Assembly (NCBI GenBank): GCA_002269645.1
Contig: NIVC01001449.1
Span: 124,001 to 188,000, forward strand
Direction: 5' to 3'
Source of the DNA: Macrostomum lignano
Lineage: Eukaryota
Length of the DNA stretch: 64,000 bases
Shown: in pieces, positions 137-29,827 of the stretch
How positions within the stretch are numbered: the first letter of the stretch is position 1
How the letters are laid out: every line of letters starts with the position of its first letter
Made by a program: the position numbers and the translations under genes
The notes under the pieces: model-generated
The model's database searches: none
Told to the model about the DNA's origin: nothing
What the model saw: only the letters and a program-made list of their open reading frames with translations

Positions 137-3100
137 CATCCACGTCGTGTTGTAAATCTTTAGCACTTCGTCTTCTCCAAGAACTTCTTCATAGCTCAGG
201 TAAAACTGAATAGGTTCAGACGAGCTCCGATCGAGCACCAGGTAGTTCAAGTGGTAGACAATGCCGAAGGTAATCAGAATCGTTTTGGAGTCTTCCCATG
301 TTGAGTTCATTTCGCTGGCAAGCACTTGTGTGCTGTCTGCAAGAGTAGATAAGCAAATCAGAGGATTTAAGTTGTCGTGCGATAGCTCTCACCCATCAGG
401 GCCAACCTCCGAAGGCACAGAGAGTGTATATGCCTGACGGTTAGAAAGTCAAGGACGCTGAATTGTATACCCTGTGTAGGAGTTTGTATGTTTGGGTGCC
501 TACGCACAGTATCTACAATATTTTATGTGCTTAGGGGTCAGCGGAATGGGCAGAGTTGCCTCATCGCTGGTTGTGGGACGATGTCGCCGAAGATGTTTTA
601 TCAGGGTTTCCAAAGCACTTTCGCAATTTTTTTTATAAAAATATAAAAGTACTGCTCGTACTTGTGTCATTCGGAAAGCCAAGGAGATCGAATTTCACAG
701 CGGCTCGACCAGAGACAGACAGCACTTTGAGCTGCACCACCTGGGCTTGAAACGGATTTGAGAGAGAGTAGCGTCGCCTCTCCAACTCGTCCCGTGGGCC
801 ATCAAATAGCGCCTAAATGTTAAAAAAGCAATAATGATACTAATTTTGCGCTACGTATTTAATTAACAATAAATACACCCAAAACTCACTGGAACGTCCA
901 AGCCCCAGTCTCTGTAGTAATTCAGCATGTCCTGCCGTGGTTCGTAAGCAAATAATAAATTAAACGCGGTCGGCCGACCACTGAACGGCACGTGTAGCAC
1001 CCCAGAGCCCTGCAGCGCCAAGCCAGTAACGGTGTAGGCACAGGGCAGGTACACAGTGAAGAAGTTACTGTACGAAAGCAAGTACATAGCAAAGTGGAAG
1101 GTCTCGTCTCCAGGCCAGTCCAGGGGCAGAGAGTACACGTCGCCGGCGTAATTGTTATAATCCGCGAGTCGGCTGGCGACAGCCGCGCCCACGGGAATGC
1201 GGCTACCGAAGCCGGCGCGAACGAAGGTCTGGTTGACCACCTGGTCGCCGGTGTAGCCTGCGGAGAGTGTACAGTTTGCCAGTGAAATATTCTATTTGGA
1301 AGTTGGATATGAATTCAGCGTAGGAGAGGATTGCCTTGTGACATTATTAAGCGTGCGTAGCTAGCTCGACTAACGTGGATGCAGTAGCTCTCATATAAAG
1401 ATATTGAAGCTCCCTATTAAAATTGCTTCGCTATATCAGGATTAAGGAATTCCCTTATCAGTTGGGATACCAATGCTCAAAAAGCTTGCTATAGGATTGG
1501 AAAGCTCAAGGCAAAATGCTTAGGAGTCAAAATCTAAGAGCAGATCGGACAATTGATGTTGAAATTTTCGAAGGGGCTTACATGCAAGTATACACACCAA
1601 GAAAATAAAACTAATTGTGCACAGTAAACCGCAATGGTCCACAGTTTCTCACCCAGTGGATAGCCGTACACTTCGATCTCGCAGACGGAGTAGGCCACTG
1701 ATATATTTGCGTTGCTGCGCACTCCAAAGAAACGAGCAACCTGTAAAGTACAAAAAGAGAGTGTATTTTAGTAAAGTATTTGGTATATGGAACAATCTAT
1801 AAAAACACATTTGCTGCAACTGCAGTTGCCGCGAACAGCATGTGCATTGCTGAGACTGCAGAGGTCGCAGCGTGACGCTTACACCAGCCCGAAAGTTCAC
1901 AAGCTCAAAGTTCAAATTACTGAATTTGTTGAAGTTGTGAGCTAGGTGGCGGGATACGTAGCAAGACTTTTGTCTATGTGAAATTTTGAGCTTGTGAAGT
2001 TTCGAGCCAAGTACCTCTAGGAATACTTCGTTATAGTCTAGTCTAGTAGTCCTTGCTTCGAGCTTGGAATATTTCAAGATTTCCAGAACGATTCGGAACA
2101 ACGAAAACGATTTCGAGAACAAATGAGAACGAAGTTTTGAGCTTATAAAACAGTCTGTCGCAACTACCACCCTTTTATTTCTGCTGCTGTATCACAGCAA
2201 GGTGCACTGGAATCCAGTGCGATTTTCTACTGGCTCAAAGTGATTTCTTCGAAGGGGTGGCGCAAGCAGCCCATTCAGCAGCGCACAGCCTAGCCAGCTC
2301 AATCCAATTGAACTGCAAGGCAGCTGCTTGTGGTGAATGCATGGGTCAAAGTTTCTAAACCTTCTGCTTGCCAAAACTAGAACGTTTTGCATGCAAATAA
2401 ATTCTGGAAAGCTTACATCCTTGATGATAATTTTCCACGGTTGAGGCACCACTTCGTAAAACACTTGCGCCACGATAACTCCATTTGTGTGGGACGTTGT
2501 GTTTGAGATGTAGGCCTGCGAGAATCGGTTAGCGTCCGACTGAACTCGACCTACGCGGTTACGAGCGTGAGTTTGGTTGAAATGACATCACGAAGTATTA
2601 AACTAAAATAGGTCAGGTTCAGCTCATTTGAGGTTGAGAGGATTGACCAAGCTTTATACGGGTGTACGATAATTGCTATAATGATAATGATAGTTGCTTT
2701 TAGTTATTACTACAAGTAGCCACTATGGAGTATTACATTTCGTCACTTGCGAACATACAAATGACTCTAAACTAAAACAAAACAATCAGTTTTCTTGCTT
2801 TCAGCCGTTTTTATGCTGAAAAAATATAGAAAATTTTGTTAGCCTAGGAACAATCACTGGCGTCTGGCGTTTACCTTTGTCATCGTCGCTTCGAACCCAA
2901 ACGTAGGCTTTCTCGAGGAAGCGCGGCACAATAAGATCCAGAACCACATAAGGATTGACGCCTGTGTACTGCCAGCACATTGAGTCCGATATTGACGATC
3001 GGTTGCCGTCCACAACGCCGGTATTGTTATTGCTGATTGAGTCCACGCCTGAGCTGTACACGCGCTGGTGACGGGAGAGCAACACGGGCGCCGGGAACTG

Positions 3101-29827: not shown

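Follow-up and report, generated by a model that had tools for sequence, protein, structure and literature searches.

The 64,000-nucleotide (nt) stretch of the Macrostomum lignano genome analysed here (assembly GCA_002269645.1, contig NIVC01001449.1, positions 124,001 to 188,000 of the forward strand; hereafter the window) contains, on the minus strand, one real, very large, intron-rich protein-coding gene of this free-living flatworm. The exon chain opens at 29827 with an exon that carries an ATG and a signal peptide and reaches as far as a splice donor at 137, and the gene has at least 39 exons encoding at least 2,454 amino acids (aa). An ancient block of ~1,250 residues, carried by 17–19 exons, is present twice in the protein. 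It is fairly likely that this one gene, with its two-fold super-repeat, encodes a lineage-specific, secreted, multivalent binding glycoprotein assembled from C-type lectin-like domains (CTLD), discoidin (F5/8C) domains and other extracellular modules.

The base composition of the window is ~45% GC and satellites are abundant. Long open reading frames (ORFs) are absent from the gene region, and translation of the minus strand of positions 1–31,000 yields many protein-like stop-free pieces. Exons were assembled with a purpose-written chaining program that combines codon log-odds, trained on 14 long pieces, with generic splice-site matrices and keeps track of phase. The chain on the minus strand scored 817 with the initial codon table, against 47 for the opposite strand and 40–56 for three block-shuffled controls. 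The chain is therefore far beyond chance, and the plus strand is non-coding here, without a competing gene. Under relaxed thresholds the chain comprised 42 exons and 2,503 aa, with the ATG at 29827 and a final exon at 336–101; across automatic chaining the number of exons was 42–44. A signal-peptide-led chain of 42 exons and more than 2,500 aa had been proposed in the first-pass annotation, and the program arrived at the same coordinates and count.

Curation of the automatic chain, guided by the homology between the two halves of the protein, gave a model of 39 exons that encodes 2,454 aa in 7,362 coding nt and is free of in-frame stops (Table 1). The donors are GT in 37 cases and GC in 2, the acceptors are AG in all 38, the introns are 75–2,839 nt long, and 26 of the 38 are in phase 1. 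Five automatic exons were discarded as false: 26935–26929 (7 nt), 21790–21769 (22 nt), 5027–4999 (29 nt), 18097–18002 (96 nt, adjoining a satellite) and 3918–3730 (189 nt of GC-rich low complexity sequence). An AAG acceptor at 26749 was recovered. The two GC-AG introns among the 38 have the donors AAG/gcaagt (22779–22784) and CAG/gcaaga (5096–5101) on the minus strand, and gene finders restricted to GT donors place tiny false exons at both. A single exon at 9819–9319 was rejected in favour of splicing out a 108 nt in-frame intron, 9549–9442, because it has a strong gtaagt donor, its removal conserves length with super-repeat A and with a paralogue, and the resulting junction 'ITVDNG/CLEPLL' matches 'VTANKDCLKPLL' of the paralogue.

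The protein consists of a signal peptide followed by two colinear super-repeats, A (exons 28732..12965) and B (exons 12023..137). In the final model blastp aligns A with B in one high-scoring segment pair (E=1.2e-17) that is 22% identical over ~700 residues; a second pair lies further on, and the exon sizes and phases of the two correspond one to one (Table 1). Each super-repeat is predicted to carry, in this order, a CTLD, a segment termed Z, a six-Cys kringle-like module, an FTP-like beta-sandwich, the segments L and X, and a discoidin domain. A second beta-sandwich with F-type-lectin motifs, a second discoidin-like domain and a Y segment would then follow.

Table 1. Exons of the curated gene model, all on the minus strand, with positions in the window. 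The last column gives exon sizes (nt) in super-repeat A / the corresponding sizes in B, entered at the (first) exon of A.
Exon	Position	Content and remarks	A / B size
1	29764..29827	ATG and signal peptide; donor gtaagt	
2	28319..28732	CTLD1, phase 1; Pfam Lectin_C match	414 / 172+221
3	27743..27903	module Z1 part a; matches B exon 9819–9550	161+118 / 270
4	27543..27660	module Z1 part b	
5	27046..27174	Z1 part c ('LNATLSASS...'); paralogous to 9441–9319	129 / 123
6	26624..26749	six-Cys kringle-like module 1, first part; AAG acceptor	126 / 135
7	25517..25576	kringle-like module 1, second part	60 / 75
8	24965..25204	FTP-like beta-sandwich module a part 1 ('YYLVVDLKT'); no Pfam or PDB match	240 / 225
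9	23867..24103	FTP-like a part 2 ('GRYVVI...ALKIQG'); tblastn to paralogue P0005 29%, E=3e-6	237 / 234
10	22784..22953	linker module L1, 170 nt, GC donor gcaagt; length equal to B exon 6342–6173	170 / 170
11	19572..19944	beta-rich module X1	373 / 355
12	19417..19478	discoidin D1 part 1 ('GFWQP...DWHQ')	62 / 71
13	18906..19200	discoidin D1 part 2; Pfam F5_F8_type_C match	295 / 141+148
14	16991..17263	FTP-like module b part 1	273 / 240
15	16754..16911	FTP-like module b part 2	158 / 134
16	16545..16632	FTP-like module b part 3 ('ARYLTV...VEIEVHG')	88 / 88
17	15676..16010	discoidin-like D2 part 1; 35% identity to exon 1257–890	335 / 368
18	14659..14800	discoidin-like D2 part 2 ('LKLEVLGYP')	142 / 151
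19	13183..13442	module Y1 part a	260 / 200
20	12965..13100	module Y1 part b	136 / not in window
21	11852..12023	CTLD2 part 1, start of super-repeat B; Pfam Lectin_C and PDB CTLD matches	
22	11465..11685	CTLD2 part 2	
23	9550..9819	module Z2 part a; donor gtaagt	
24	9319..9441	Z2 part b ('CLEPLL...LNFTVTASS'); junction fits paralogue '...TANKDCLKPLL'	
25	8379..8513	kringle-like module 2, first part	
26	8229..8303	kringle-like module 2, second part	
27	7876..8100	FTP-like module c part 1	
28	6984..7217	FTP-like module c part 2	
29	6173..6342	linker module L2, 170 nt	
30	5248..5602	module X2	
31	5101..5171	discoidin D3 part 1; GC donor gcaaga	
32	4304..4444	discoidin D3 part 2; Pfam F5_F8_type_C match	
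33	3195..3342	discoidin D3 part 3 ('LRWMLFGC')	
34	2875..3114	FTP-like d part 1 ('VVDGNRSS...C...NPYVVLDL...RSDDDKGR'); aligned to FBP32 'AIDGNRNS...C..NPWWRVDL..NRGD'	
35	2417..2550	FTP-like d part 2; UniProt fragment A0A1I8J0E9 begins here	
36	1653..1740	FTP-like module d part 3	
37	890..1257	discoidin-like D4 part 1; 32% to paralogue, E=4e-14	
38	662..812	discoidin-like D4 part 2	
39	137..336	module Y2 part a; weak donor at 137, alternative read-through to stop 103–101	

Parts of this gene are present in the public protein set. A profile of the exon pair 16008–15676 and 1255–890, searched against 1.84 billion representative proteins, returned three matches. The M. lignano UniProt entry A0A1I8J0E9 (P0001; 324 aa) is identical to the model at 313 of 313 aa, from the first codon of exon 2550–2417 to the last before 137. 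This identity crosses four curated splice junctions, and the four junctions in the last five exons are confirmed by it. A0A1I8FVK6 (324 aa) is a one-residue variant of this entry, and may be an allele or homeologue. The public fragment carries the UniProt name 'Omp85 domain-containing protein', for which Pfam gives no support; the name is therefore probably an annotation artefact. The paralogue models P0002 and P0005, A0A1I8GUP4 and A0A1I8G7X9 (741 and 766 aa), are ~30–35% identical. A single paralogue model has the order discoidin-like, Y, CTLD, Z, six-Cys module, FTP-like, so that a single product crosses the super-repeat boundary. The third match, P0003, was set aside as an unrelated repeat protein. 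No match was returned from an index of 5.8 billion proteins with either 680 aa of concatenated exons or the A/B alignment, and paralogue P0005 found its own cluster only. This index also missed the identical A0A1I8J0E9, so negatives from it are weak. A look-up of the genomic locus of the paralogue found nothing on record, a literature search on the four UniProt accessions found no papers that mention them, and limited searches found no relative outside M. lignano.

The CTLD assignment is just under threshold in Pfam and is supported by similarity to known structures. On the first crude gene model Pfam found almost nothing. On the curated model Lectin_C (PF00059, gathering cut-off 22.6 bits) matches CTLD1 with 22.4 bits (E=2e-4) and CTLD2 with 17.3 bits (E=0.008), over 92–103 of its 107 positions. 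A phmmer search of the whole protein against PDB gave 34 weak matches, of which 33 are CTLDs (among them KLRB1, LOX-1, DC-SIGN and type II antifreeze protein). All 33 lie on residues 1257–1416, within CTLD2, with a best E of 0.004, and the closest are domains of the natural killer receptor and LOX-1 type. True C-type lectins are defined by the motifs EPN or QPD plus WND, not by the fold. On inspection these Ca2+ and carbohydrate motifs are absent from both copies, with 'GQAAS' in CTLD2 and 'TGGDAVG' in CTLD1 at the long-loop position, and 'YRSS' and 'LPEN' at the WND position. The domains are therefore lectin-like rather than classical lectins.

The discoidin domains are supported to a similar degree. 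F5_F8_type_C (PF00754, gathering cut-off 28.2 bits) matches D3 with 27.8 bits (E=3e-6, profile positions 11–115 of 127) and D1 with 14.5 bits (E=0.038); the two cover 105 of the 127 positions. Since four-way alignments of the discoidin-like or FTP-like modules were misaligned, profiles were built from A/B module pairs. The D1/D3 profile matches 33 PDB chains, all of them discoidin (neuropilin-1 b1, factor V, factor VIII), with a best E of 0.003. D2 and D4 have no Pfam match, and their profile finds lactadherin C2 over its full length among 4 PDB matches, a weak similarity at E=1.2. The corresponding domain of the paralogue scores 19.0 and 16.8 bits with F5_F8_type_C, and its name in UniProt is 'F5/8 type C domain-containing'. 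The F5/8C discoidin domain is thus supported in two copies, and is probably present in four when D2 and D4 are counted. Both the C-type lectin-like domains, in two copies, and the F5/8C domains of the first-pass annotation are in this way supported.

Its two other domain types fared less well. For the F-type lectin, modules b and d share DGN(R)..S.C...NP..(V/L)DL...R.D....R and C-E-(V/I)-E-V-x-G-Y with FBP32 and eel agglutinin at the right spacing. At E<=10 the b/d profile has a single PDB match, the striped-bass F-type lectin FBP32 (3CQO), weak at E=0.24 but colinear with both of its domains and in register over 'DGNR..S..C...NP..VDL...R.D' and 'CE(V/I)EV.GY'. However, no Pfam family matches any of the four modules a–d, and the profile of a, c and the paralogue has no match in PDB. 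The F-type lectin assignment is therefore weak: b and d offer motifs and this one PDB match, and a and c match nothing. F-type lectins bind fucose through the motif H-x(24-26)-R-x-D-x(4)-R/K. Module d has R-S-D-DDKG-R in place but Gln for the His ('CWQY' vs 'CTHT'), and the motif is missing from modules a, b and c.

Kringle domains, as had been proposed, found no support from Pfam, PDB or PROSITE. Neither Kr1 nor Kr2 matches the Pfam kringle (PF00051) at E<=10, nor does the paralogue at E<=1, and the Kr1/Kr2 profile has no PDB match at E<=10. A kringle has the signature [FY]-C-R-N-P-[DNR] (PS00021) and six Cys spaced ~21/27/11/11/4. The signature is absent, with KCRYLL, MCLHSP and YCISTT at the site, and the six Cys are spaced 18–22, 13–15, 9–10, 9–10 and 4–7, which leaves the C2–C3 loop at half the kringle length. 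A three-sequence alignment of the modules was compared by hhalign with six human kringles, an unverified reference set; the probability was 83% (P=9e-6) under one setting and 50% (score 25.9) under another. Column shuffles, 120 in all, had a mean score of 10.4, a standard deviation (SD) of 2.0 and a maximum of 17.3, which puts the module score ~8 SD above, though Cys-rich modules can score spuriously. A kringle hidden Markov model has its best local matches in 2,490 aa in Kr1 and Kr2. This similarity is a hint, to be taken as a lead and not a test.

For the Z, L, X and Y segments no relatives were detectable in Pfam or PDB, the X1/X2 profile drawing nanobody noise only from the latter. The N-terminus is a hydrophobic signal-like stretch ending in ASA, and no transmembrane-grade hydrophobic stretch occurs across the 2,454 aa. 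Computed on a 2,490 aa version of the model, the mature protein is ~270 kDa with an isoelectric point (pI) of ~6, contains 2.0% Cys, 2.8% Lys and 4.9% Arg, and has 42 N-x-S/T sequons where ~22 are expected. The earlier proposal of one long secreted mosaic gene agrees with these properties.

The product is predicted to be a secreted, heavily N-glycosylated protein. Judged from the domain families, a signal peptide and 10–12 binding-type modules in series would make it a multivalent extracellular cross-linker or agglutinin of glycans or surfaces. Candidate settings are mucus or matrix, the agglutination of microbes, and gamete or egg coats. Since the Ca2+ and sugar triads are absent from both CTLDs and the fucose-binding His from the FTP-like modules, neither classical Ca-dependent binding of mannose or galactose nor binding of fucose is predicted; proteins, lipids or unusual glycans may be the ligands. 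Several results weigh against a secreted multivalent binding protein of this kind. The case for a lectin function is weaker because the residues with which CTLDs and F-type lectins bind sugar are not conserved, and all Pfam matches are under their gathering scores. The four module types have no profile similarity to one another (probabilities <1% in profile-profile comparison), and no fold can be assigned to ~40% of the protein, namely Z, L, X and Y. AlphaFold, applied to 9320–9817 (the 108 nt in-frame intron being included) and to the single-sequence paralogue P0002, gave a predicted local distance difference test score of 34.8 for both, too low to use, and confirmed no fold. Of the exon chain, the last five exons are covered by a database model; it stops at 101, and a complete product of ~2,465 aa is therefore possible.

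The first-pass annotation held the gene to be still open at the window edge, which is probable but unproven. A0A1I8J0E9 reads through the donor at 137, a weak gtgcgt, for 11 more residues to a stop at 103–101. A gene that ends there, with two super-repeats and a complete product of ~2,465 aa, is possible but the less probable alternative: A0A1I8J0E9 and A0A1I8FVK6 both end exactly at this stop, and the automatic chain also chose it. Yet these database models are automatic fragments, and a gtgcg donor also serves at 24965. Splicing at 137 is favoured because super-repeat A has one further exon (13100–12965) at the homologous point, because the paralogue A0A1I8G7X9 runs on past the homologous '...WM' (model '...TWM') as '...GDIWM/FETRAL...PILLAPIELKIHF', matching this next exon of A, and because the tblastn similarity with the paralogue breaks off precisely at 137. 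The gene is therefore likely to continue beyond the window edge, probably into further repeats. A and B are complete copies of one block, and tandem duplicates are common; two or more tandem paralogous genes, A and B for example, might thus have been wrongly chained into one. This is highly unlikely, as the 941 nt gap before B contains no separate ATG or signal-peptide exon for it, the junction 12965/12023 stays in phase 1 with good splice sites, and the paralogue database model crosses the same Y-CTLD boundary inside one protein. The satellite-packed introns, the nearby transposons and the high divergence of all domains could also be read as those of a decaying or never-translated duplicate, a pseudogene in a repeat-rich and recently duplicated genome. 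Such a duplicate is extremely unlikely with 7.4 kb of coding sequence in 39 exons free of stops and frameshifts and with all splice sites intact. The exon sizes and phases of A and B have moreover been kept at only 22% identity, and this implies purifying selection on the fold over a long time.

If one continuous, functional gene is accepted, its product could still act otherwise than as a recognition or agglutination protein. It might be a component of the temporary adhesive (glue) or of mucus, a cohesive cross-linker like Mlig-ap1 or the sea-star Sfp1 rather than an immune or recognition lectin. Marine temporary adhesives are likewise giant secreted glycoproteins, in which CTLD, discoidin and galactose-binding lectin domains are put to use again (PMC6410801, PMC9229212), and in flatworms Tmed-krg1, a kringle protein, takes part in adhesion (PMC9229212). 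However, the kringle-like modules here are truncated and Pfam-negative, and Tmed-krg1 is of a different kind from the product of this gene. Mlig-ap1 has KR-rich regions and vWD, C8, TIL and EGF domains, and Mlig-ap2 has vWD, TSP-1 and LDL-receptor-like domains and long repeats (PMC6410801). Their domain features are absent here: the vWD, C8, TIL, EGF and TSP-1 Pfam domains and Lys/Arg-rich repeats were found in none of the protein chunks scanned. Identity with either protein is rejected, since the published architectures differ. Cys is low and the pI near 6, as given above. Adhesion is thus improbable. In a further reading, itself unlikely, the gene is the founding member of a Macrostomum-specific giant super-repeat family. 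The ~1,250 aa cassette would then be reiterated beyond the window and in paralogues to form a long multivalent fibre, with a mucus, egg-coat or microbe-binding function. The cassette would comprise a CTLD, a truncated mini-kringle, four beta-sandwiches, two of them FTP-derived and two discoidin, and three or four folds without relatives, the mini-kringle, Z, L, X and Y being new domain variants. A secreted multivalent binding glycoprotein is preferred over both.

The introns of the gene carry long satellites, at 8556–9306, 9900–11008, 18091–18513, 5628–6108, 7290–7761 and 20326–20838. Their units include (AGAT)x187, an 18-mer in 62 copies that recurs in another intron, a 53-mer in 9 copies, a 33-mer in 14 copies and (TCCTC)x101, and they yield long spurious ORFs in all frames. 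A 55 bp minisatellite at 12595–12983, with 7 copies at 100% identity, starts inside exon 13100–12965 and repeats its donor GAC/gtgagt seven times. Since 55 is not divisible by 3, splicing from a later copy of the donor would change the reading frame.

Beyond the gene, the window contains several other features; an Rfam scan of its whole length found no RNA family. A stop-free ORF of 1,267 aa at 47324–51124 (minus strand), with zf-CCHC, aspartyl protease, reverse transcriptase, RNase H and integrase domains, looks like an apparently intact gag-pol of a Ty3/gypsy-type long terminal repeat retrotransposon. It is flanked by two paralogous ORF pieces on the plus strand, at 43554–43952 and 52471–52800, which repeat KRAMRLMRLGRKR and KRAMRLMRIGRR units that are dibasic-flanked and end in Gly. 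From this pattern the pieces resemble a neuropeptide precursor that would give myomodulin-like x-MRLMRL/I-amide peptides. Remnants of a piggyBac-type transposase (DDE_Tnp_1_7) are found at 57320–58606 (minus strand). A Tc1-like transposase (HTH_32 and DDE_3) at 59041–60410 (plus strand) is broken over three frames and is therefore decayed. Also on the plus strand are an exon for the first transmembrane helices of a rhodopsin-family G-protein-coupled receptor at 62910–63395 (7tm_1, E=3e-10), an unassigned Cys-rich ORF at 40516–41010, and exons at 37724–38734 that combine a Sina-type zinc finger (Sina_ZnF 28 bits vs a cut-off of 32) with a RING-like Cys pattern and probably belong to an E3 ligase gene.

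Invertebrates commonly have mosaic proteins made of CTLD, discoidin and F-type-lectin-like folds. Drosophila Furrowed is among the mosaics that combine a CTLD with an FTP-type domain, and is a membrane protein with many sushi repeats. The gene described here would share with it the pairing of a CTLD with an FTP-like module, but has no sushi, EGF or transmembrane segment and has instead discoidin domains and the 1,250 aa super-repeat. With neuropilin-1 b1 and factors V and VIII the similarity is in the D1 and D3 domains, and with lactadherin, weakly, in D2 and D4, without the CUB, MAM, A or EGF domains of those proteins. The UniProt fragments and paralogue models are short, automatic and uncharacterised, and neither the complete 39-exon gene nor its two-fold super-repeat can be seen in any of them. 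The first-pass annotation had recognised no named protein with all four domain types. No characterised orthologue with such an architecture was found, but its claim of novelty is tempered by parts of the gene and of its paralogue that were already in UniProt as unreviewed fragments. The gene is thus uncharacterised and belongs to a familiar class of invertebrate mosaic lectin-domain proteins, with the two-fold super-repeat as its main distinction.

No new class of system is opened by this gene. The exon-by-exon conservation of A and B at their low sequence identity is a clean case of ancient internal duplication, and the correspondence allows gene models to be mended where RNA data are lacking. 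In the public protein set the gene is represented by fragments only, one of which is misnamed. If confirmed, the model would provide the fully resolved exon-intron structure of a giant lineage-specific extracellular protein for a model organism of regeneration and bioadhesion, and the gene is a candidate for mucus, immunity or reproduction screens in M. lignano.

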